The notes beneath the pieces were generated by a model that was given only the letters and a program-made list of their open reading frames with translations, searched no databases and had not been told where the DNA came from. A program made the position numbers and the translations under genes. This document shows, in pieces, positions 3,661 to 48,769 of a DNA stretch of 64,000 nucleotides (within the stretch, counting starts at the first letter, position 1; each line of letters starts with the position of its first letter). This DNA is from Iphione sp. A-MEVVRFRX5 (Eukaryota): assembly GCA_976226885.1 (NCBI GenBank), contig OZ320321.1, positions 35,836,001 to 35,900,000 on the forward strand. The letters are read 5' to 3'.

Positions 3661-4225
3661 TTAAAATCCTTTTTCTATTCAGATCTAAAATATTTGGCCA
3701 GGAACATTCGTCAGCAAGTCCAAAACTATCAGGATTGGTGTGGGCATAACCATCAAGAGCTTTTCAAGAAAACCAAGTGTGTACAGAAGATGAAAGTACA
3801 TAACAAGCCCAACGGAAGAACAGAATGAGAAGTACTTAATGATCATAAACACAGACAGAATTGTTTACATCCATGTCTTTGTGAAGAAGATGACAAAAAC
3901 ATACATGAAATTCACTTGCTTATCTCAGGAAACTAGCAGGAAAGCCACCTGACTTTTTTGCTATGAACAAAGTGAAATATTTGCAGGCGGAAGGACCTAG
4001 AGAAGATATCTCTGGCATGCCAAGTCATGTCAGAGCAGGTTAGGAAAATTATTTCCATAGTCTAATATGTACAGTCAGAACTCGATATCTGAATTCTCTC
4101 TGTTTCACAACGTTTTGGTCAGATATTCAGTAGGTTTGGATATTGAGTGCTTTTTTTCTTGTAGTAAAACACCCTTTTGTATCGACAAAAACAATTTGAA
4201 AATGGGTAAATTTGGATGATAATTT

Positions 4226-5290
4226 TGACCTCTTCCGAAAGCTCTCCTCAGACCTCGCAGGTTCAACAGACACCAAAGCCCTATCAGGGCCCTTCCGAAA
4301 GTTCTCCCCAAACTCATGTATCTAAGCCCCATAAGGGCCACCTCTAGAAACAAATAGCCACCCAAGGCCCTACCAGGGCCCCTCTGAAAGTAAAATAGAC
4401 ACCAAGGCCCTATCAGGGCCCCTTCCGAAAGTTGCTCCCAAAACTCATATATCTAAAAGCCCCATAAGGGCCACCTCCAAACGCAAAATAGCCAACCAAG
4501 GCCCTATCAGTGCCCCTCCGAAAGTTAAAATAGTCACCAAGGCCCTATCAGGGCCCCTCCGAAAGTTCTCCCATCTAAGTCCCATAAGGGCCAGCTACAA
4601 ATGCAAATAGCCGAAAATCAGGGCCCCATCAGGGCCCCTCCGAAAGTAAAATAGACACGGAGGCCCTATCAGGGCCCCTTCCCGAAAGTTCCCCCAGACC
4701 TCACACAGCTAAGCCCATTTGGGCCACGTCCAAACGTAAAATAGCCAACCAAGGCCCTATCAGGGCCCCTCCGAAAGTTAAAATAGTCACCAAGGCCCTA
4801 TCAGGGCCCCTCCGAAAGTTCTCCCATCTAAGCCCCATAAGGGCCAGCTACAAATGCAAATAGCCAAAACCAAGGCCCTATCAGGGCCCCTCCGAAAGTA
4901 AAATAGACACGGAGGCCCTATCAGGGCCCCTTTCCGAAAGTTCCCCCAGACCTCACACAGCTAAGCCCATTTGGGCCACCTCCAAACGCAAAATAGCCAA
5001 CCAAGGCCCTATCAGTGCCCCTTCGAAAGTTAAAATAGTCACCAAGGCCCTATCGGGGCCCCTCTGAAAGTTCTCCCATCTAAGCCCCATAAGGGCCAGC
5101 TACAAATGCAAATAGACAAAACCAAGGCCCTATCAGGGCCCCTCCGAAAGCAAAATAGCCACCAAGGCCCTATCAGGGCCCCTTCCGCCGTTCCGCAAGA
5201 ACAGCCCTCTAAGGGCTCTTCCGAAAGCCACCTCAAACCGCACTTGCAAGATTCTTCTCTGCCAGAACAACGGCCCTTCCAGGGCCATCA
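4226..5290. repeat. Higher-order tandem repeat (about four 252-256 bp units built from 37-80 bp subunits with a GGCCCT-ATC-AGGGCC hairpin)
   Basis: The ATAGAC(A/C)C marker recurs near 4395, 4651, 4903 and 5155; the core CCAAGGCCCTATCAGGGCCCCTCCGAAAG repeats many times. Confidence 0.9.
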
Positions 5291-6019
5291 TCTGAAAGTA
5301 TACCATCCCCCCCAGCGGCGAACCAGACCTTGACACCGGCGCACCAGGAGTCCAACAACACAAGCCCCACCAAACGTCAGACACCAAACTGCCACCAGTC
5401 CCCACCAAAGAACAACATCGGAGATCAGACGCTCCAAATAACAAGGCAATTGTGCTGCCCATTGGGCGAAGCACCTGACTGGCCCCTCCGGGGCCAGCCT
5501 AACCAGCTCCAACTCCAATGATAATTTTGAATCTTTTTTTAGAGACGTTAATAGCTGCTACGTAGGTGGCAAAATGCATGGACATTCCCAGACATGAATG
5601 CTGTTCATAGCATCATCGTACATCCTCAAAATCATGTACCTCAGGGAGTAAAAGCCATCAGTGAACCTTCTGTAAAAGGGTATTGCTGAATATCCAGGAT
5701 ATGTGGTCTAGAGGTATGAAAGCTGTGAAATGTTTTGCTAGAAACTTCAAAGACGGCAAAAGGCTTATATATTTGGTAAAAATGTATGTACAAGTAGGAT
5801 ATCATAACGTTTCATTTTAAAAGAATGGCCCGTGCAGTGTATTCAGTTTCATTCACGTTTTCATTCCCAGCTGATGATAAGCAATAGAGTATGATAATAT
5901 TTTGATTTAACTCTAGATATCTGGATATAAATGGACCTACTACTCAAGAGATTAGACACTTTTGACTTTTTTTAAAGGCGAGTTAAGCCTAGCTATCTAC
6001 CTTGACAGAATTGACTCTT

Positions 6020-6339
6020 GTGTGGGAGATATATGGGAGGGAGAAACCTAGGTATGGAGGGGGGTATCTTTTTAAAAATTTGTTTCCACTTTCTTCCTCT
6101 GGTTTTCAATAATAATACAATATGTAGAGTTTTGACTAATTTGCATGCGTTTTACAGTTTTTTTGCTAAATTTCCATGGATTTTATTGTTTTCTTCTGAA
6201 TTTATTAAAAACATGACGTGAAAACATTTATCTAAGAAAATTCAGCCTTGGAAACTCTTTGGGGCCAAAATCCTTTTAGGTAGGGTGATGTTTTACTAGG
6301 TAGGGGTGGATAACCAGAAACACACCTATTTTTTTGGCC
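6020..6339. mobile_element. PIF/Harbinger (Tourist-like) MITE, reverse-oriented copy
   Basis: Ends ACCAGAAACACACCTATTTTTTTGGCC|TTA; internal sequence matches the copies at 23517 and 51619; the left end is degenerate. Confidence 0.7.
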
Positions 6340-8057
6340 TTACCCCAAATTCAGGTTGTACTTGGGACAACTGTTGGATTACCTTCTTCTGTCGTAATGA
6401 TTTCCTTTGTTATTTGTGTGCTCCATTACACTAAAAACCTATTCTGAGGAGATTCTTTATACTGATTGGAATTGTTCTTTTTTATCAGATCATAGGGGGA
6501 TCTTTACTGTCAGGCCCGCACTATTTCAGCAGTATTACACATGCTTCATTTTAGTTTACATTATTAAAATCCCCTCATATTTATAACATGCTTATATTCC
6601 CTCTTGTCCCTTTGGGCATTTTGTCCAAACCAGTTTGGGGAAAGTCTGTTTATGAGATTGAGATTGAGACTTTTTATTTACTTCTCAGTGATACATGAGA
6701 GGGGTCTTCCAGTGAATGTTGAAAACATTAACAGTTAGAAATAGAAAACTAAATTGGATTAAAACAATAGGCGAATAATAGAGGTCACGATAGATAAATA
6801 GTAACGAAAGGTTAATTGATGCTAAATATTGAGATATCATGATCCTAGTTACGAGTTGAGAAAATTTCCTGTAAGACAACCCTTGCAATTCACGGCTTGA
6901 TCAATCACTTCATACAGACAGTAGGGCGAGGACAGTACAGCTGTACTTAATAACAACAAAGTACATGATCACAACTGAAATCCTATGCTTTTTTTGAGCT
7001 TAAACTACCCCTACGTCCTCTCTCTCTTTGTTCCTATCGTCCCTCTGAGTAAATTATTCTATGTAACTATACTGTGTTCGACTCCTCTCTTGAAATTTTG
7101 CCAGCTAATTATAAGAGCTGTTCTCGCTTCGCTGACGAAATGTGGTCCGAGCTTGATCAAGGTTCAAACCCTGGTCTCCTACCTGTGTTCTTCACTCTGT
7201 TAAGTACCTATGTGAGGGCCAGTGCTCTTATCCACTGCGCCCCAGAGGACGAACATTGGTTAGGCAATAATTTTATCATTCATTGCAAGGTTTAAGTTGA
7301 TCTGTGGTTAGATGTTTTATATTTCAATTAAATATACTTTCATAAATGTACTAATGTGGGGAAAGACCCCCACAACCGCCTTTCTTTTCTTTTTTTTCAT
7401 TAATTAATGGTATCTTTAGCATGACCTCCAGAAATGTTTGCCACTTTTTCATCAATGCAATCCATCTTTAGTGAAACATCCAGTAAAATTTGTGACTTTG
7501 CATAAATTAAATGTATCTTTAAGTACCTCTGGAAAAATTAGCCAATTTTCATAAATTTCATGCATCTTTAGCATAGCAGTGGGAAACATCCCTTTTTTTC
7601 TTTCATTAATGTGGGGGAGGCAATCCACAGTCCCTTTTCTCTTCTTTTTCAAACATTAATTATGTTACTTAAAGTACAGATTCTTTTTAGACCAACATAC
7701 ATTATATTTTCCTGCCTACCTATAGTGTACTGCCCCTTTCGCTCTCTTTCTACAAACCTTCTTGACTGGGTCGGCAAATGACACAATTAGGATTGAATCA
7801 CTCAGAATAAGCGAGGGGTTTGATTGGAACTTGTCAGTCATCTCAGCTGTCGCCTTGTAGCCCTCTAGTCTGGTAGATGGGGAGGGGAAAAAACCTTCTA
7901 GACTGTGTTGGCGGTGTTCAAACCCTGGCCTTCTACCTATGTAGACTGATATGGGAAGGGGGGGGGGGTTGAAAGCCACCTCATTTTCGACTCGTTGGAC
8001 TTAATCCTCTTGATGTGGTCGGCAAATCACTCAGTTGCGGGGAGGGTTGTTCAAATT

Positions 8058-8148
8058 AGATAAAGTTTTCATGGAGACAATTACACTCATAATGTCCTCA
8101 TGAACTTGAATATTATATTGTGTAATTGTCTCCAATTGTACTTTATCT
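8058..8148. repeat. Short fold-back (mini-MITE-like) palindrome
   Basis: AGATAAAG..TGGAGACAATTACAC ... GTGTAATTGTCTCCA..CTTTATCT inverted arms. Confidence 0.7.
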
Positions 8149-8499
8149 CATACCTACAAAGGAAGGCTTGGTCACTCAGTTCACTCAGTGAGGACAGCAG
8201 AACACTACTTCTTAACAACAGAGTACATGATCACGAATGACCACCTATGTTTTCTTTTGACACTCTCTAGGCGTTTCTGAGCAGAGGTTAGCATATTCCA
8301 CGCATTCGTCCCTTGGTACCAGAATGACCTTTTCTACATGGTGCTTTTTGATTTGCTCTGCACAAGCAAGGAACCTAGGCTATGTCTAGTTGTCCTTCCA
8401 CTATTCTTTATGTTACAGAACCCTAAAAGGTACATCCTGTGCATCAACAATTTTAGTTAGGATCCACCTATGCTCATTAATGATAAGAGATAAAACACA

Positions 8500-9260
8500 C
8501 CTCTGAGTGAAAGCGCAGACCGATCAGTTTAGAGAGTGCCTAGCAAAACTATGTGCACCGTTAAATTCTATTTGCAGATCATTCATATTGTTTTTACAGA
8601 CAGTTGCAACAAATGGGAGACCATATTCAAAGAGACAGGTAATGAAAGCTTTGAAAAAATATATATATATATATATATATATGCGATGCTCAAAGCTTCT
8701 ATATTTAGCAACCTTAGGGCGTAGACTCTTTGTTCGAGTTTGCTTCTGGTTTTTGCTACTTCATCACGCTGTAACCCAGGACGTCACATAGCGTGCTTCT
8801 CAGACTTTGGTTTCCAATAGACAAATTAAAATGAAACCCTCTTGCTTTGCTGAATGGCATATAGGATGTCTTGCTTTGTTAGCAATTAAACCATTCTTGT
8901 GACACAATTTTATAAAATCTTTCATCCCTCTCTGAAGTTTGAGCTGCAAAGCAACAACATTTAAGATTGTAAAATACAATGAAAGGTCATCTGCATAGAT
9001 ACGTTTGTGATTACCAGGGCTCTTGGGAGCGAATTTATCATATCAAAGAGCAAAGGGCCTACTTGGCTCCCTTGTGGTACCCCTTGCCTTATTGGTAGTA
9101 TCTGTGACACATGATCATTACATTTGACATACTGCAATCGGTTGGATAGGTATAACATGATCCAATTTAACGTGAGCGTACTAGGACCTGCTTTAGATGA
9201 CTCTTCAACCAACAGACTGTTATTAATTATATAAGATGCCATGGTCATATCGACAGATAA
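8500..9260 (-). mobile_element. CR1/L2-group LINE reverse transcriptase fragment, decayed
   Basis: ORF 8961-9248 contains WIMLYLSNRLQYVKCN...SQILPIRQGVPQGSQVGPLLF, the canonical RT GVPQGS.LGP motif; boundaries approximate. Confidence 0.85.
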
Positions 9261-12200
9261 GGCAGCAGAGTAAAATTATCATTTATGTCATTATAACATT
9301 ATACGTGTCCCTCAAAAACGCTGATACTGCTATTGAAGTACTGTTGCTGCCTGAAACCATGTTGTTGGTTACAAAAAAGCCTGCAACCCCATTAAAGAAC
9401 CTTCATTCACAGAAGCTTCTTAATACAGGCATACGTATACCCGCTGCTGCTTATACAGACACTATAGATCCAACTTGGCGGTAAAAATCTAACAGCCCAT
9501 CCTCGAAACCGTGAAGCCGGAACAGGAAATTCATTAAATTCATTCACCACCTGTATTTGATATATCTGCACAGTTATCAGCCATATCAAGTACAGATGGT
9601 ATTATGTAAATGGTCATCATCAATGAGAAAGAGGAAAAGCGCCATCAAGTTACAATAATTCCTTGAGGATGGCCTAGGAAAGAGAAGAGACCCAAATGAG
9701 GGCCAAGTATTGAAGAACTACCGGGAATTATCTTACAGGAAATATAGACCAGGAAGGGGATATCCCCTCGACGTTGTAATGTGGATTATTAAAAACGAAA
9801 CAAGGGTATCAACACGTGAGGAAGTCTAAAATACCTATGATTGATGTAATATAAGATATTACCAGCTCCAGTAACGTTATTTTTATACGCCAACATTCTA
9901 AGTTCACGTTTCAGATTCACTGAAGGCTTTGTATGGAAGAAAGTAAAGGATATGTACGAGCCCGGACAAATACTTATTGCATATGCGATTTTGTTGATGG
10001 AAACCGATACCTTTCGAGGGAAAATATAGGGGAAGGAGATTAATTGATACTGGACCACCACTCTCCGCGAAAAGATCCTCAACGCTTTGATTAATCAATT
10101 TTACACGTTTTAACCAGAATTACCGAATGATTCTCCTAGGTATAGGATTCCCCGTCTACTGGTTTATCCTTTTCTGCTTTCATGACTTGTTTTGCCTCAC
10201 TGATGTATACCCACTGGAGATCTGGAGAGTACATGTACATGTACTTACCTTTGTCAGCGTCTGACTTCGATTTCCTCATACCTCTCAGCTGCTCTAATTA
10301 GTATTGCACTTAAAAGAACTATTTCATATTTGTTCATGGTGAAAGGAAACCTATATATGTCGTCTCCGAAGGTGATTTTGTGGAAAGAGAGACGACACTG
10401 GTAATCTTATTAACAACGATACTTATTTCTGAAACATTAATGGTGATATGGTTTATCAGGAGAGTGCACTAAGATTGGGGCGCAAAGGTAAATACATATA
10501 GGTAAAGTGGGGGAGAGGACTGTCAAATGTACATCAGCCTCTAAACAGATGTGTGAGGAGTGGAAAATTGAGAATTTGTGCGTATCGAAAGGGGATACGA
10601 TAAGGCAAGAAAGGAGAAGATGATTGCACGATGCAAAGGGAATGTAGGATTACGATTCATGAAAAATATCGACCAAAAGCACACGCGGATGGATACAAGA
10701 AAGGAAAGTAATTATGACATCGAGATATGGGAGACAAATGGACAGATAGATTACACACTTGACTTTTATTACGACAGACACACAGACGGACATATTTGAC
10801 AAAGGGATAGGTCCACACTGTTATCGATAAATGTGGCAAGAGTCGATGAGCTTGCATCCAAATGCTGACTTGAGGTTTTCATTTCTACATAGTTCAAACC
10901 CTACGTTGAAATGTTAAGAACATACAAAACTTTCCTGTTCTAACATGACCCTATGATTGAAGAGTCCTATCGCTTTGGTCCACGTTGTTTTAATCTACAT
11001 GTGCATCACTCGGAATAAATGTGAGCCAGGTGGTGTTAGGTACGATCTCACCTGGTGGTGCGGGATGAGACTAAGACTAGACTGGCTGCTACGTCGTAAA
11101 AATGTCTACCGTCATTAATATCCTAGACTAAGATGGATTCATCTACTTTAGGTGTGTCATCGTGGGATGTAGTCTTATGGATAGGGACGGTACTAATACG
11201 AAATTAAAATGTCAATTTAAATTCATGAATATGTTTTGGTCTACTATACTAATATTACTTTTCTAATGAAAGGTGTTACATGCAAGGGTTTGTGTGTTGG
11301 GCATGCGTGTTGAGTAGTATTTACGTCAAACTGAGCTAGATCACGTGTCTTACCTCTCGTCTCCGATTCAGCTATAAAATCAACAACTTCATTATACATG
11401 ACATCAAAAGCAGAAAAAGTGGTTGTAATAGGTGAATATCAGTGAAGAACAACACAATGTGATACATGAAGAAGAGAATATATGGAAGTCAGGCCTATTG
11501 GGATACAATGCTGCTCTTTCCACTCTTGTCACTGTTTTTTTTTTCAACGCTACGTCATATTGCCGTGTAAATATCATTTATGTGTACTATCCTGACGTCC
11601 ACTGCCTCCTCTTTTACTTCTACTAAACGTTGACGGATTAGTGAGGAATTCCCAGTGCTCCAGGATAGCCTACGGATAGCAGAAGATGACAAAAATCTAA
11701 TTCCGAAACGGTCTTTCTCCTCCAGAATCTGTGTACCCTCCAAACGGTCTGCCAGCAACAGCTTTCATTCAAGGCCCACTCACCTTGGTATCAAAGGTAT
11801 AACCCGGGCTGAAAGAGGCCGAGAGACATGGCCGCGTCTCTCATATATTAACAAAAGTGCTGGGTGACGCCTTCGGCTAAATTCAATTACTCCTGTCTGC
11901 ACCCGTAGTATTGTGGTGGGAGGCCTCGCTATTTGTCGGTAGGGGGCGTAGGGGCGTTGGGGGCGGGGGTTGTCTCTTGCCTCTTTCCCGGCGGCCAGAC
12001 TCTTGCGGCACAAGGGGGCGGTCCATAGGCTTGCTAATAAAATAGCACCACCCCACGACTCAGCTGGGCCCCCCCTCTCTCTTGATATTGTTAGTTTTTC
12101 TTCATAGGTTTTACGTTTCCTCGGCCATTTTTGCCCCCCTCCCCGTCAGGAGGGAAATTGGCGGATACGACGAGAGCTTTGGCCGCGCGCTCCGTCGCGC

Positions 12201-39036: not shown

Positions 39037-39171
39037 AACTGCACTCGACTGAAACCAACAGGCCACTGACGCTTCTCCCCTAACCACCAACATAGGTACA
39101 GAACAACTCAGTAGGGGGCGACACCTCAACTTGCAATACCTAGCGACCGGCTTTGACGGTAGCTGTACTAT
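39037..39171 (-). repeat. Split direct repeat A2
   Basis: 135-bp copy of 48635-48769, two mismatches seen. Confidence 0.95.
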
Positions 39172-39373
39172 TGCCCCATCGTCTACACTGTCTTTGAATG
39201 GAACATTAAATACAAATCACAGGAACACTATAAGTTGGAGACAAACAAATACAAGGTTTATTCAAGTGAAACCCTAGTCTCTTGAGACTGACATTTAATA
39301 CATAACCTGAACTAAACATCACAAATATGACACACAAGGAAAACTTGGTCTCTTGAGACCGACTAATCATCCA
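39169..39373 (-). repeat. Split direct repeat B1
   Basis: 205-bp copy of 38724-38928; overlaps the YR stop codon and shares TAT with A2. Confidence 0.95.
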
Positions 39374-40053
39374 AACCCAACAGGGGATTATGCCCAGGCT
39401 CTTGGGACATTAGTTTGGCAGCCTGGGCAGACGCCATCATCCTGCTTGTGTACCTGGATGAACCTGGGAGAGTCTTCCACGTTCCTTGCACTAAGATCTG
39501 GCTATCTGAGGCCCCTGCCAGTTGGAGTGCCTGGGCGCCCCCCCTTCTGAAACTATGCAAGGAAAACATCTTAGGGTCATGGCCAATGGCGGACAACGTT
39601 TTCCTCAAAATGGATTGCAACTTTCGTACTGTAAATGGTTGCTTGTATATCGGATCCACGAATAGAGGTTTTTCATTACCTTCGTTCTTAATGACTGATA
39701 ACATGTTGATCATACAAGTGACCGGGCAGTAGACAGCGTTCACACTGGGTATCGTAATTACCTCGGGGGGCCCGGAATTGATGGTTTTTGACCATTTGAT
39801 ACTAACTTGAATACAATCAGATACAAATGAAACATCTTGCCTAGTCAATTGCTTCTTGGAGTCAAAGGCGTCCTGGGTTTTTGGGGCTATGTTGCTTTGC
39901 CTGACAAGTGAGAAGAAAAGAAATGTAAAAATGGCGTTCAGGGCCACTCCCAGATGCCCTAACAGTTGTAGGTAACGAACAATTTTGGACAAAATGTTGA
40001 CTGTGATGGGAGCTTTCTGATCCACCTGGTGTTTGGAATTCACGTGAACAGCC
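39363..40053 (-). pseudogene. Tyrosine recombinase, C-terminal catalytic part (interrupted by piggyBac)
   Basis: FFSLVRQSN (R), SLHSFRRGGA (H-x-x-R), QGTW...SRY (W, Y); joins in frame to 45487-45764 as VATAL-KAVHVNS when the piggyBac and one TTAA are removed (about 322 aa). Confidence 0.92.
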
Positions 40054-40776
40054 TTAACTCTTTGCTGACCGCTAGATTGCGTCATGCGAGCATTGGTTTT
40101 AGGGGTAATGAAGTCAAAATTAGATTTTTAGCTGTTAATAAAGGTATTAAAATGCGATTTTCGGTGTCTGGGCATAGTAGAGATGTGGAAGTAATACATA
40201 GTATCAATGGAATATTTTAAAACAAATGGATTTTATGGAAATGATTATGAATGAAATGTATCAACCACCTCGAAATGGACACTGGAAAGTATCTGCGGAA
40301 TAGACAAGTGCATTTTTCTCTATGAAGGAATAATTTTCGAGCCAATATATAAGTGGATGAAATTTTCCTGAAGTGTTTTCCTATGCAATGATATATGAAT
40401 TTAAAAAGAAGGAGCGAATTTGTTATAACTTACGAGCATTCAAAGTCACTGATGCCACCTGGTGAAAACAACAGTATTATTCTGTAGTTCTGGCATGAAA
40501 CACTAGGGAAGTGACGTACTTGTATAAGCATATTTGAAATGACAACAGGAAAGATCGTAAGCAATAAAATCAATATTTATTCAGCATACACATAGTGTAA
40601 GTATAAAAATGACATTATGTGGAAAAATATTTGAGAAATAAATAAAAAAGGTTTTGAAAACACACAAATTAACCGGTGCATGTACGTCGCGTGACGTCAT
40701 GTTGTTGCATCACTCGCACCTGCAGTTGTGTCTGTAACATTCATTGCAATTTTCCATACAAGATCATCATCTAAAC

Positions 40777-41686
40777 ATGGAGCAAATGTTGCAAGCCTTT
40801 AAGGATGAAGGGTAAGTGTATTTGGTATGGTCCGGTGATAAAATAAGTATATGTTATATAGAATAAATGCAAGAATATATGGAACAAGCGTACATTGCAG
40901 TAGGCCATATGTCACGATAAGAAACACACATCGCTGCATCTGTCCAACAAGAAAAATATTTTTGATATGGGGTGAATCTGGGCACGAATGTATCACTTAT
41001 TGCTAATAGTCTAATGATTTGAACAATATAAATGTGATTTGCACATATGTATGTGACATCATATGATTGTGATGCGATGTATTGCTGGAATTCGTATGAA
41101 CATGTCTTGTGTTAGTGGCACTGATGCCTAGGTGATGAGGTAGTAAGTGAATTACTGTTTTTCACAGGCTAGAGGTTCCTGCAGGCTTGGTCGCCTTGAT
41201 TACATCTGGTCAAGACAGAAAGGCAATTTTTCATAAATTATGGGCAGCGGCGAAGGTAAAGTTCATTGTGACATCACAGATTGTATGACTGTATGTTGCT
41301 CACTAACCAGTATTTGTTCCTATATAATGAAACCAATCAATGCAAAGTACATTTACTCGTGATTGTACAGCATCCTAATTATACACTGAATTGTGCTATT
41401 GTTTGCAGTTACATAAATACATACATGTGACAGTGGTATTTATTCCCCTGAGGAGAAACCTACCTAAATTATTGATAGTGCTTTCCATTGGTATTGATTG
41501 TTATCAGTAGAACATTATTATATGCTGCTTTTTCAGTTTGGTGCTGGCCTAGGGGAGAACAAGAAGACATTTGTTTTCCCAGTCCAAGTACGTCTCGCAG
41601 TTCGAGAGCAATTCCCAGAAGACAGCTACGCAAGCTATGACCAGCAGTACAACGATGATGGCACAGTAAGGAAAATATCTAAGTAA
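40777..41686 (+). CDS. Second piggyBac-internal gene: 3 exons (40777-40811, 41168-41255, 41537-41686), 90-aa protein of unknown function
   Basis: Two GT-AG introns with compatible phases (2, 0) give MEQMLQAFKDEGLEVPAGLVALITSGQDRKAIFHKLWAAAKFGAGLGENKKTFVFPVQVRLAVREQFPEDSYASYDQQYNDDGTVRKISK*; convergent to the transposase; TGACGTCA at 40692-99 upstream. Confidence 0.7.
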
Positions 41687-41883
41687 ACATCATTTCAAAA
41701 ATCCTGTTAGATCCTACTGACATTCACTGTGGATAAAATACATTGAGTATGAAAAAATAATATTGGTTACTATACATTTCAGATTTACTATGTGTCCATC
41801 AAGGAAATGGCCTCTATGCCATATCCAAAGCTGAAAGGAAGCAAATGACTGGCACGAGAGAATGACAGAAGCCATTACCACCA

Positions 41884-44800
41884 TCAGTTTGAATGACAAT
41901 GCCGGTGAGTGCGGTACTTATCAAACTCACGGGAATGCCATATGGGAAAGCAATTCCGCACTCTGTTGAGGCAGAGGTGCACATTGCACTCATCATCCGA
42001 ACATTTGATGTATGATTTGATTTGTTTGTTGAACAGGATGTAACACACCTTACAGTTACGCCTCACGTCTGTGTATGCAGGATCGTGTGGGCCTGTTAAA
42101 ACCAGTGTCTTCCTCCTCTTCGTGGGGTGTGTGAACAATGGTGGCTCCTCCTCATCATCTATGTTTGCTAGTTGGCGGACTAGTTCCTCTCTGTATGAGA
42201 GGTGAGAGTAGCCTGTAACAGAACAAGAACATTGCTAAATGAATGAACAGAAAATACTCACTGCACCAGACAATGTACATACAGATTGTCTTTGCTTTTT
42301 CCCTTCCTGTAGTTACAGTCTCAGGCCATTCAATGAATGACCTTTCATCCTCGCAGTTACTTTGCCATTTAGGTGCATTACCTGTCAGTTGAGCTGATGA
42401 TGATAAAAAAAAAAAGATGCATTTACACATTCTGTTATTACCTGCTTTACGCTTGAGGGCAGGATACTCTGTGTGCAGGTTTCTCCATTCTTGAAAAAGA
42501 ATGAAACTGTTCACGATGGCAACGTCCACCATGTGGAAGAAGAGTGTCTTCCACCATCGGACACACTTCTCAAGACAGTTGTAGCTCTCTATCATTTGAT
42601 CCGCTAGATCAACGCCCCCCATATTCCTGTTGTATTCAGAAATACAGAGAGGCATCCGGACCAGCTGTGGCCTGAAATTTCCTTCAGGATCCTTTCCCCG
42701 ACGTCTTACATACAGTCTGGCGTGTCCTGCATGTTGGGTACTGATCATTGTGACCATTCGTTTGTCTATCCACTGTAGGAAGAGAGTAGGTCCATCCCTG
42801 ATATATCTCATCTCTCCACGTTTGGATTGTTTTGACCATGTCGGATCTTTCAAAGCCTGGAGAGAAAGAAAGAAAACTGAGCATGTTAAGAAAAACAGTT
42901 ATAAAAAAGTAAAGAAATAACATGTTGTCGAAATTCTAATAACCAGTTCACTGAAATGACTGCTATCAAAGCTCCTTCATATTGAGATATTTGGTGAGAA
43001 AGACAGCACTAGCTGACTGTACCTTACAAAATTATTGCATTTCACAATGTTACTAACATATCTTACCGTAGGGAAATGCCTCCTCCAGGGCTGCATTGTC
43101 CCACACATCAGGGTTTTGTATGCATAGAGGTGATCCGCTAAAACTTTTGATGTAAAGAAGTTATCACAGAAAACTCTGTATCCTTGGTTCCTGTACGAGT
43201 CCACGAGTGTAGTGACAACGTCATACCCAAGACCCAACTTGCTTTTGGTGGCAGATCGTCCGGTGTATATGCTAAAAATATGTATGGCAGATAAAAAAAG
43301 AAAGAATGATATCTTTGTATGTAGACTGTCATTAGATTCAAGATTCAGTACAATGTAATAATTCCATACCACACGAGTGAGTGGCTTCCCATTGGGGAAA
43401 TCAGTATGCATACATAATACACATCATTCAGTATTCCTAATGTTTTCGTCACCTAAATCAAATAGTTACCTGAACTTGCATGTATATCCAGTCTTGGCGT
43501 CACATACACACCAGAGCTTATAACCAAACTTTGTTGGTTTGTCTGGCATGTATTGACGGATTGGCGATCTCCCCTTTGACTTAACCATCCTTTCATCCAC
43601 AGATATTGCCATACGTGGTTGAAAGAAGGCTTGGCAAGCATTTTCCATGTGAGTGAGAAGAGGGCGGATCTTCGTCAACTTGTCATTGGCGTCTTCGTGA
43701 CCTGGCGTAGAAACATGAAGCATTGCATTCATGGCCTTGAACCTGCAAAATGTAACATCAGTATGGCAGTCATCGTAGGTGATGGATGGGGGCAGCACAG
43801 TAATGGTGACAGAAATGGTGACAGTGCCTATTCATAGATCATGTATTGGCCAATTTTTACCGGAATAAACAACGTTGATTACTACATACTTCTTCTTACC
43901 TATTTCTTGAGAGAAATTGTCTGGCCCAGCCACCTGAGTATAAGGTGGCTTGGGACCAATTCCGTTCCAAGTCCTTCCTACCAGCAAATCCAGTAAATAT
44001 GATAAGGGCAATCATATTTTTTAATTCCTGTAGACAGACTTCTTCCCAGGAACCATCAATTTTTTTCCCATAGCTGGGCTTATCATGAACGTGTAACCAA
44101 CCGTAAAGGTTAGTATTGTCCACAATTGAGCTAAGATGGAGAGAACACACTAACACAACTCAGCGAATAAAGTGATATGTTGTTTTTTATTAATAATCCC
44201 AACGTTTCGGACACGTATTGTGTGCCTTCTTCAGGGGTCCACAATTGTCTGAAAGAAAACAGGTGCAAATGTCACCAACAATGTAAGCATTTCAAACAAT
44301 TTCTGGCAGTACCATATCTGACATCGAATCAACACTTCTGTTCTATTTTCATATGTACGATAAAAATTGAGTTAGTCATTTAATATATATTAGATGGGAA
44401 ATACATATTTATTCCCAACAACAGGCTGCCTTTGTGACATGTATTCTTCTATACATAACAAATATGATAAGGGGGGTCACGAAAACCACAAGACATATAA
44501 ATAACATACCTGAAGGATAGTATCATCGAAGAATAATTGAAAGAAATCAATTTCTCTAGTAAAACGAGCCATTCCTAATCTAGTGATCCTTTCCGCCAGA
44601 TGGGGCCCAGGTAGGCGAGAAGGCATGAACTTAACACTAGATGGCAGATGGTCTACGTCTTTGTACGTCTTGAAACTGTAATTTATGACAGACAAAATCA
44701 CATTAAATGAGGCGAAGTCATCCCAAAAATTGATTTAATTCCATCAATTTACATATACTGGAGTATTACTGGCAAAATTAAGCATAAATGTTGCACATCC

Positions 44801-45255
44801 ATAAAGACCACGATGCACTGCTGCAAATAAGGTCAACATTACGTCAGGACGACGTCACTGGTTCAATAGGCAGTGCTCTGACCGTCATGCTTATTGGGGC
44901 AAAATTCTTCATTATGGTGGTAGGTAACTATTTCTGACAGCATAAATAGCTTCGATACTCATCAAATTAAAGATGGTAGACATTTTAAATACTTCTGAGA
45001 CATATAATTTTGTAAACAAAATACTTACCCTGAGGGTTCGCCTGTCACATCTAGTGTTTCAACACCAGCGTCAAATTGCAACTCAGTTCCAGCAACACAT
45101 TCAGGTGAAGCAAGCAATTCCATCTGCTCATTCAAGTTGTCTTCCTCTTCTGGGGTTAACCCTTCATTTCCAATGGAATCTATAACAGCTAGACCATATC
45201 CAGCTGATATAAGCTCTTTAGCCCTACGGGCAGCTTCTCTCTGAGGACGTGCCAT
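41884..45255 (-). pseudogene. piggyBac (PGBD4-like) transposase, 7 exons, 614 aa when repaired; disrupted by a 108-bp insertion in exon 3
   Basis: Exons 45255-45029, 44675-44510, 44248-43900 (minus the insertion and one TSD copy), 43742-43470, 43271-43067, 42856-42442, 42212-41884; all six introns GT-AG and in phase; catalytic SVDERM, FCDNFFTS, GGVDLADQ; C-terminal Cys-rich domain CKVC...C...CNVHLCL...CF. Confidence 0.92.
44129..44236 (-). mobile_element. Penelope-like element terminal fragment with a minimal hammerhead-ribozyme motif
   Basis: CCCTGAAGAAGGCACACAATACGTGTCCGAAACGTTGGG then AATAAA; flanked by the 11-bp duplication CAATTGTGGAC (plus-strand copies at 44118-28 and 44237-47). Confidence 0.75.
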
Positions 45256-45486
45256 GACGCAGACGCATGTCTTATCCGTGACTCAATGAAAATGTGTTCG
45301 ATTTTATCTATTTACTTTTATAATCTGAGAAAATGGCACCCAGTTGCTAAAATGTGCTTTACATCAATAACTTAACATAACACAAGTGTTAAATAATACT
45401 TCTTTATTTCAAAATACACAACTCTCATCATGACGTAACACATCATCCAGATCTGGATGATATTCCCATTGGCGGTCAGCAAAGAG

Positions 45487-45764
45487 TAAAGGGCTGTCGC
45501 CACCTTGTGGGATTGGAACACGGTAGTGGTAAAGTCTTTCTGCAGCAGCACGTACTTGAGGGAAGATATATGCTGGCTACAAACCTGGGGGCACAAGCCT
45601 TGCAATGCCAAATATTCAATATACAACAGTAGGTGAATGTCCTCCAATGCATGGAGTGGGAACTGATAGTGTAGACAAAACGCTAAGCCTAGCTCAGCTT
45701 GCTGTATACGTCTCTTGTGAGTTGCGGGAGTCACGGCCTCGTGCTGGCGCTGTATGGCTCTCAT
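45487..45764 (-). pseudogene. Tyrosine recombinase, N-terminal SAM-like part
   Basis: TPATHKRR...LAFCLHY...LLLYIEYLALQGL...QHISSLKY fits the DIRS YR N-terminal pattern; ends at the piggyBac TIR. Confidence 0.85.
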
Positions 45765-48634: not shown

Positions 48635-48769
48635 AACTGCACTTGACTGAAACCAACAGGCCACTGACGCTTCTCCCCTAACCACCAACATAGGTACAGA
48701 ACAACTCAGTAGGGGGCGACACCTCAACTTGCAATACCTAGCGACCGCCTTTGACGGTAGCTGTACTAT
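48635..48769 (-). repeat. Split direct repeat A1 (element 5' end)
   Basis: 135-bp copy of 39037-39171. Confidence 0.95.

Follow-up and report, generated by a model that had tools for sequence, protein, structure and literature searches.

The question raised by the stretch of DNA analyzed here is whether a natural animal piggyBac can carry a second gene beside its transposase and, if so, what kind of protein that gene encodes. Genome engineering relies heavily on piggyBac, which is regarded as having just one gene. The stretch, hereafter the window, comprises 64,000 nucleotides (nt) of contig OZ320321.1 from Iphione sp. A-MEVVRFRX5 (assembly GCA_976226885.1, positions 35,836,001 to 35,900,000 of the forward strand), and it holds a piggyBac element of 5,429 bp in which both the transposase gene and a second open reading frame (ORF2) lie inside the outer terminal inverted repeats (TIRs). 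We consider it fairly probable that ORF2 is an element-borne gene of four exons, that it belongs to a piggyBac-linked family with remote kinship to KolX and the P2X7 ballast domain, and that its product acts in trans as a helper or regulator.

ORF2 was first described as three in-phase exons encoding 90 amino acids (aa) from ATG to TAA. Its frame, its donors (GTAAGT and GTAAAG) and its pyrimidine-rich CAG acceptors all stand, and the model was one exon short. The gene does not end at the TAA within 41537-41686, as the last six codons and the TAA are read-through into intron 3. A fourth exon was added because a donor and acceptor pair, the C-termini of homologues, a match to Nucella lapillus and the AlphaFold2 (AF2) model all call for it, and the product then has 105 aa. 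The gene and the nearby polyadenylation signal are laid out as follows.

40777-40811, plus strand: ORF2 exon 1, 35 nt, starting with the ATG and ending in phase 2; the first exon of the Haliotis asinina relative P0001 is also 35 nt.
41168-41255, plus strand: ORF2 exon 2, 88 nt, carrying the R29-K30 motif; both Haliotis genes have 91 nt, with a one-codon gap here.
41537-41665, plus strand: ORF2 exon 3, 129 nt, the conserved core, matched by homologues in tblastn at E 1e-13 to 2e-5; donor ACA/GTAAGG after 41665.
41783-41848, plus strand: ORF2 exon 4, 66 nt, acceptor tttcag/ATT, TGA at 41846-41848; matches the Nucella C-terminus at E=1e-5.
41439-41444, minus strand: AATAAA inside ORF2 intron 2, the sole canonical signal downstream of the transposase stop.

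The match of the exon-4 peptide to N. lapillus, a single comparison, has 7 of 13 residues identical and 12 of 13 positive, and the peptide aligns with every full-length homologue. These full-length relatives extend about 30 residues past the TAA of the 90-aa model. In the AF2 model, this region forms a strand (residues 85-87) and a short helix, with a mean predicted local distance difference test score (pLDDT) of 84-88 over residues 81-100. With exon 4 in place, the ORF2 TGA lies 35 bp from the transposase stop; the 197 bp given earlier to the stop at 41884 are correct for the TAA of the shorter model. The protein had been described as free of cysteine, and this is also true of the 105-aa product. 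Upstream, the perfect cAMP response element (CRE) palindrome TGACGTCA was found where it had been reported, at 40692-40699 and 78 bp 5' of the ATG, and it occurs three times in the 64-kb window. No AATAAA or ATTAAA was found within about 850 bp downstream of ORF2. As judged from its sequence, ORF2 is a genuine predicted four-exon gene converging on a seven-exon transposase gene.

A phmmer scan of 1.84 billion representative proteins with ORF2 found five true relatives of 69-137 aa (E 1e-8 to 7e-4) and one spurious repeat protein. The family profile gave E values of 2e-47 to 4e-12 in a search of 5.8 billion clustered proteins and added only one further fragment; the family is therefore almost unannotated. 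The relatives come from H. asinina (P0001), H. rubra (P0002), N. lapillus and two further assemblies, and the family is conserved across three or more species of gastropods, with five near-identical members at six loci in N. lapillus. A word-indexed protein search with the single ORF2 sequence and a metagenome contig scan were blank, and looking up P0001 and P0010 in the ESM Atlas by feature and by structure gave no match either. In the family alignment, the exon 3 core contains the invariant residues T52, V54, P56, R60, R64, F67, Y75, D76 and Q78.

The exon structure is shared as well. Exon lengths are 35/88/129/66 nt in the window, 35/91/126/102 nt in H. asinina P0001 and 74/91/123/126 nt in H. 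rubra P0002 (Haliotis genes as annotated by NCBI). Between the window and Haliotis, introns 1 and 2 occupy identical columns of the alignment and intron 3 differs by no more than one codon; the phases agree for all three. One relative (P0006, at locus L003 of an ENA assembly) is intronless, and its frame runs through all three junctions. Two other ENA entries, P0005 and P0007, are prokaryote-style single-exon ORF calls on eukaryotic contigs; they consist of exon 3 flanked by translated intron ends (e.g., ...IIFQ/FGGG), and introns 2 and 3 therefore lie at the same spots there. Such calls illustrate how small spliced genes of transposons are mis-annotated or lost.

A spliced ORF with no second copy could also have arisen by chance, from GT-AG dinucleotides and open frames that happen to combine in the AT-rich DNA of a transposon. 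Indeed, when the window was searched, neither ORF2 nor the element turned up a second time, and hmmscan at E up to 10 returned no Pfam match for either the 90-aa or the 105-aa product. This explanation is nevertheless already refuted by the homologues with matching exons in several species, by the intronless version and by the confident AF2 model, and we regard it as hardly credible. The original prediction of a second, spliced gene inside a piggyBac is thus borne out by gastropod homologues with matching introns and by one lineage without introns.

The family is also tied to piggyBac transposases. Among the five homologue loci with readable context, on which this count rests, all five have an adjacent DDE_Tnp_1_7 transposase (L002, L003, L004 and the P0005 locus, and an uncalled ORF in L001). 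The co-occurrence that had been proposed as a check is therefore found, and at two of the loci TTAA-type TIRs surround both genes. The arrangement at each locus, in its own coordinates, is given below.

L002, H. rubra: ORF2 at 8001-8937, plus strand; transposase at 9197-10894, minus strand; tail-to-tail.
L001, H. asinina: ORF2 at 8001-8867, plus strand; uncalled transposase ORF of 406 aa at 9079-10299, minus strand; tail-to-tail.
P0005 locus: ORF2 at 8001-8210, plus strand, as the exon-3 ORF call; transposase pieces at 9969-11323, minus strand; tail-to-tail.
L003: ORF2 at 8001-8354, plus strand; transposase at 5195-7000, minus strand; head-to-head.
L004: ORF2 at 7001-7468, plus strand; transposase at 4722-5929, minus strand; head-to-head.

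In L001, both genes are enclosed by a perfect 21-bp inverted repeat starting TTAA-CCCTTATC (7893-7913 and 10525-10545), and in L002 by an 18-bp TTAA-type inverted repeat of 94% identity starting TAACCCTTG. The partner transposases share 27-40% identity with the window transposase in the DDE core. Given this identity and the differing arrangements, the pairing of ORF2 and transposase has outlasted long divergence, gain or loss of introns and a change of orientation. Because the family is conserved beside piggyBac transposases, ORF2 is an element-borne accessory gene and not a chance ORF. In L003 and L004, where ORF2 is intronless and head-to-head with the transposase, both genes lie between long arrays of repeats of about 150-190 bp, inverted between the two sides (3666-4941 and 8803-9901 in L003).

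The change of orientation bears on another explanation, in which ORF2 is a passenger, i.e., a host gene or fragment captured by one piggyBac lineage and without a role in transposition. ORF2 has no fixed position relative to the transposase, as might be expected of a passenger: the two genes are tail-to-tail in the window and at three of the loci (L001, L002 and P0005), whereas L003 and L004 have them head-to-head. However, neither the 1.84 billion representative nor the 5.8 billion clustered proteins contain a free-standing host homologue, and every locus with readable context is piggyBac-linked in spite of the divergence just described. Analogous KolX-like second proteins in red-alga and oomycete piggyBacs and in Kolobok also speak against it. 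A passenger is therefore very unlikely in our judgment.

What, then, does the accessory gene encode? The original prediction had pointed, by eye, to a likeness with the C-terminal motif of the ballast domain and KolX. We compared the ORF2 family profile in hhalign with single short C-terminal segments taken from Figure S6 and Data S6 of Kojima & Bao 2022 (PMC9587614) and from human P2X7, with the following results.

Kolobok-1_XT second protein (2p): P=3.6e-4; the 44 aligned columns, with the block AVRE-x-F among them, are 34% identical.
Kolobok-1_NV 2p: P=0.014.
Human P2X7, residues 540-593: P=0.012.
piggyBac-2_GrCh 2p: P=0.083.

All four alignments have one common register, which is also that of the likeness seen by eye, and none of 400 shuffles of the Kolobok-1_XT segment reaches its score (25.0, compared with 10.1 +/- 2.0 and a maximum of 18.0 for the shuffles). 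As a positive control, piggyBac-2_GrCh 2p matches Pfam P2RX7_C at E=1.4e-6, and its only match in the PDB is P2X7. The register equates R29 of ORF2 with R546 of P2X7, K30 with H547, F33 (Y in relatives) with Y550, P56 with P570, R60 with R574, R64 with R578, F67-P68 with F581-P582 and Y75 with Y588. The guanosine diphosphate (GDP) ligands of rat P2X7 are R546, H547, R574, R578 and K583 (PMC7016195). Four of these five positions are basic and conserved in the ORF2 family, several of them among its invariant columns. ORF2 thus carries the GDP-site motif R-[HK]-x-A-Y ... P-x-C ... R-x-x-x-R-x-x-[FY]-P ... Y-x-G-[FY], bar the positions of K583 and C572. Residues ~28-75 of ORF2 are hence, as a supported but remote relationship, homologous to the C-terminal sub-domain of KolX and with it to that end of the P2X7 ballast which binds GDP.

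Structural comparison with the ballast, which had been suggested as a check, went partly in the same direction. The AF2 models are confident both for the window protein (pLDDT 83, predicted template modeling score (pTM) 0.73) and for H. asinina P0001 (pLDDT 83, pTM 0.75). When these two models were searched against 48,161 chains, the rat P2X7 ballast (6u9v_A, residues 480-595) was among the top five for both, at rank 3 (Z 2.9, root-mean-square deviation 3.9 Å, 76 residues aligned) and rank 5 (Z 2.6, 3.8 Å, 71 residues aligned, 17% identity). Z values of at least 2 were reached by 65 and 33 chains, respectively. Chance is unlikely to account for these ranks, because the target had been named beforehand and the correct sub-domain was hit among the 65 and 33 chains.

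Several results weigh against the homology or against a role for ORF2. The structural Z values of 2.6-2.9 are at noise level, equal to those of unrelated helical domains, and Foldseek found no match for the ORF2 model in the PDB. With E up to 10, neither the window protein nor any homologue matched Pfam PF20478 (P2RX7_C; five homologues were scanned), and a PDB sequence search with the family profile returned no P2X7 chain. The four hhalign targets are homologous to each other and hence are not independent tests. At the position of K583, the fifth GDP ligand, the family has acidic residues or glycine, and C572 is not conserved either. The intactness of ORF2 in the window is a weak sign of selection, because this is a single young copy with a broken transposase; the argument for selection is carried by the cross-species data and not by this copy. 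Finally, we know of no biochemical role in transposition for KolX or the ballast, so the mechanism can only be inferred.

The lack of a P2RX7_C match throughout the family leaves room for a real piggyBac accessory gene that is unrelated to KolX and the ballast. Its product would be a small helical DNA-binder of subterminal repeats that recruits or restrains the transposase, like the Myb-like protein of PIF/Harbinger. The best PDB sequence matches of the family are indeed DNA-binding modules, namely the LEM-like domain of LAP2 (E=0.6, at the motif RK-VY--LY) and TelA, a protelomerase (E ~1). In the structural search, BEN domains on DNA, the N-terminal domains of Xer/IntB recombinases and the initiator-binding domain of IBP39 were level with P2X7, and the conserved inner inverted repeats of the element are possible binding sites. 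However, these DNA-binding matches are at noise level (E >= 0.6, Z <= 2.5), none was hypothesized beforehand, and they have no consistent register. The alignment with KolX, by contrast, is significant against shuffles, and its conserved columns are the ballast landmarks P570, R574, R578, F581-P582 and Y588. We therefore see an unrelated DNA-binder as unlikely. The LEM-like domain and the protelomerase were dropped as leads to DNA binding, their matches being non-significant.

The part of the ballast that ORF2 lacks is its zinc-binding half. The seven cysteines of the dinuclear zinc site are not present in the family: the window protein has no cysteine, and the relatives have only C-x2-C and H-x3-[H/C]. 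Most of them (P0001, P0002, P0006, P0010 and P0012) carry H-x3-[H/C] in helix 2 and C-x2-C at the C-terminus. The composition of these two motifs suggests that the relatives have a zinc site different from that of the ballast, likely with four ligands. All four residues are missing from the window protein (compared at residues 19-25 and 100-105), the TGA falling just before the position of C-x2-C. This apparent loss may be a trait of the lineage or decay of this one copy.

KolX-like second proteins have already been reported in two piggyBac families, piggyBac-2_GrCh from a red alga and piggyBac-14_PI from an oomycete (Kojima & Bao 2022, Mob DNA 13:24, PMC9587614). Beyond that paper, our literature search found none that links piggyBac with KolX or the ballast. 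ORF2 is likewise a second protein inside a piggyBac and resembles KolX's C-terminal portion without its cysteines, and it shares with the GrCh and PI proteins the register RK-x-x-Y ... P ... [IV]R-x-x-[FW]P ... G-x-Y. In contrast to GrCh 2p, which scores as P2RX7_C, the mollusc family does not, and the direct comparison of the two is the weakest of the four profile-to-sequence alignments (P=0.083). The mollusc family further differs from the GrCh and PI proteins in being animal, in usually having three introns, in a different helical half at its N-terminus and in its H-x3-[H/C] ... C-x2-C motif, which the window copy is without. The gastropod family thereby adds another, more divergent member to the KolX-like piggyBac proteins: animal, spliced and below the reach of Pfam.

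Other known systems can be compared as well. KolX of the Kol0-lineage Koloboks is the accessory protein of a TTAA-targeting cut-and-paste transposon and has the best sequence similarity to ORF2, but it is longer, adopts the complete fold of the ballast, in which seven conserved cysteines bind two zinc ions, and accompanies a transposase of another superfamily. The P2X7 ballast (PF20478, rat 6U9V; also zebrafish Nanor) shares the C-terminal sub-domain with the GDP site, but it is a domain of an ion channel and not a free transposon protein, and ORF2 is without its zinc-cysteine half. The Myb-like protein of PIF/Harbinger and TNPA of CACTA are small non-catalytic partners beside a transposase within TIRs, and in this they are analogous to ORF2. 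No relationship in sequence or fold was detected between ORF2 and the second proteins of PIF/Harbinger or CACTA.

If ORF2 is a KolX-like accessory gene, it would be transcribed inward from the left subterminal region that holds the TGACGTCA site. Its protein would fold compactly, mostly helical with one small two-stranded sheet, and display the conserved basic cluster R29, K30, R60 and R64. This cluster may serve as a binding site for a guanine nucleotide or for some other ligand that carries phosphate, and the protein would act in trans on piggyBac transposition, as helper or regulator. The transcripts of ORF2 and the transposase would moreover have to overlap in antisense because their stops are only 35 bp apart. 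The minus-strand AATAAA, which was found as originally reported and is alone of its kind nearby, lies in ORF2 intron 2, and the 3' untranslated region (UTR) of the transposase would therefore run antisense across ORF2 exons 3-4. Such an overlap could add a second layer of control.

A wider idea is that a mobile accessory module, common to Kolobok and piggyBac as two unrelated superfamilies of TTAA-targeting transposons, gave rise to the end of the P2X7 ballast that binds GDP. In piggyBac, the module would be a free nucleotide-sensing switch that couples the transposase to the state of the cell, or would take part in the TTAA-specific seamless excision and integration. We consider this quite improbable. 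To our knowledge, no molecular function is known for KolX or the P2X7 ballast in spite of a solved structure with GDP and zinc. Were the idea true, the two-gene piggyBacs of molluscs would be the first tractable system for the function of the ballast/KolX module. A free-standing, cysteine-less version of 105 aa tied to assayable excision and integration would give a simple handle on this function. An extra layer of control or efficiency, so far unrecognized, could also come to light through a conserved partner protein of natural animal piggyBacs. Annotation misses such genes: the family has a handful of members in 15 billion predicted proteins, several of them mis-called as single exons.

The element that carries ORF2 has the features of the piggyBac superfamily, with a DDE_Tnp_1_7 domain (Pfam), a TTAA/TAAA duplication, short TIRs and an empty site that restores the host ORF. 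ORF2 had been placed inside the TIRs, and it lies within the element by either choice of ends; the ends themselves are further out than thought, at 40058 and 45486 with the target-site duplications directly outside. The ends and the transposase gene are as follows.

40054-40057, no strand: left target-site duplication, TTAA; the joined flanks restore an open host frame.
40058-40072, plus strand: left TIR, CTCTTTGCTGACCGC, the perfect 15-bp reverse complement of 45472-45486; each occurs once in the window.
45472-45486, minus strand: right TIR, the perfect 15-bp partner of the left TIR.
45487-45490, no strand: right target-site duplication, TAAA, one substitution from TTAA.
45029-45255, minus strand: transposase exon 1, ATG at 45255, donor GG/GTAAGT, joined in phase to exon 2.
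44510-44675, minus strand: transposase exon 2, placed by its splice sites.
43900-44248, minus strand: transposase exon 3, interrupted by an insertion; it reads TIVDP and then a stop, and is open afterwards to the normal stop.
43470-43742, minus strand: transposase exon 4, Pfam DDE_Tnp_1_7 at E=5.2e-24, with splice sites.
43067-43271, minus strand: transposase exon 5, matching the L002 and L003 transposases in tblastn.
42442-42856, minus strand: transposase exon 6, Pfam DDE_Tnp_1_7 at E=6.9e-14, with splice sites.
41884-42212, minus strand: transposase exon 7, the Cys-rich C-terminal domain, stop at 41884-41886.
44129-44236, no strand: foreign insertion of 108 bp, or 119 bp with one copy of the 11-bp duplication GTCCACAATTG counted in; the duplication lies at 44118-44128 and 44237-44247; the sole defect of the transposase.

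All splice sites of the seven transposase exons are canonical and all junctions are in phase, and the N-terminal exons were not detectable by similarity. Rfam over 39800-45700 gave no hammerhead or other RNA family, and the 108-bp insertion was unmatched. The copy is young and carries a single disabling lesion, in its transposase. A TTAA at 40669 and a TTCAA at ~44864 were considered as element ends and rejected: the repeats there are imperfect with indels, and transposase exon 1 would lie outside and yet splices in phase. The perfection of the outer 15-bp TIRs and the host ORF restored by their removal further rule out the inner ends.

The inner repeats are themselves a feature of the element.

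40668-40781, plus strand: left arm of an imperfect inner inverted repeat, starting TTAACCGGTG, containing TGACGTCA at 40692-40699 and reaching the ORF2 ATG.
44740-44867, minus strand: right arm, inside transposase intron 1.

In local alignment of one arm with the reverse complement of the other, the score is 61, compared with 36 +/- 4.3 and a maximum of 53 in 200 shuffles. The arms are placed nearly symmetrically, at distances of about 611 bp (left) and 604 bp (right) from the nearest end of the element, and each has two motifs with an ACGT core (ACGTCG ... TGACGT). The left arm is probably the promoter or 5' UTR region of ORF2 and/or a subterminal transposase-binding site, both putative. The inner TTAA lies 108 bp from the ORF2 ATG, and in the H. 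asinina element the terminal TTAA lies 107 bp from the ATG.

At the host site, joining the flanks (60 nt each) over a single TTAA gives one open frame, ...KVATAL/KAVHVNSK... This frame continues into a phage-integrase-like ORF at 39363-40085 (minus strand), the other part of which is at 45372-45764 (minus strand); the Pfam Phage_integrase match is weak. Direct repeats of 135 bp and 98.5% identity, at 39037-39171 and 48635-48769, delimit the surrounding retrotransposon. Because the open frame is restored across the empty site, we place the piggyBac within the tyrosine-recombinase gene of this retrotransposon. Before the insertion, the target site (40023-40057 and 45487-45525) already formed an imperfect palindrome, with arms of about 30 bp, centered on TTAA.

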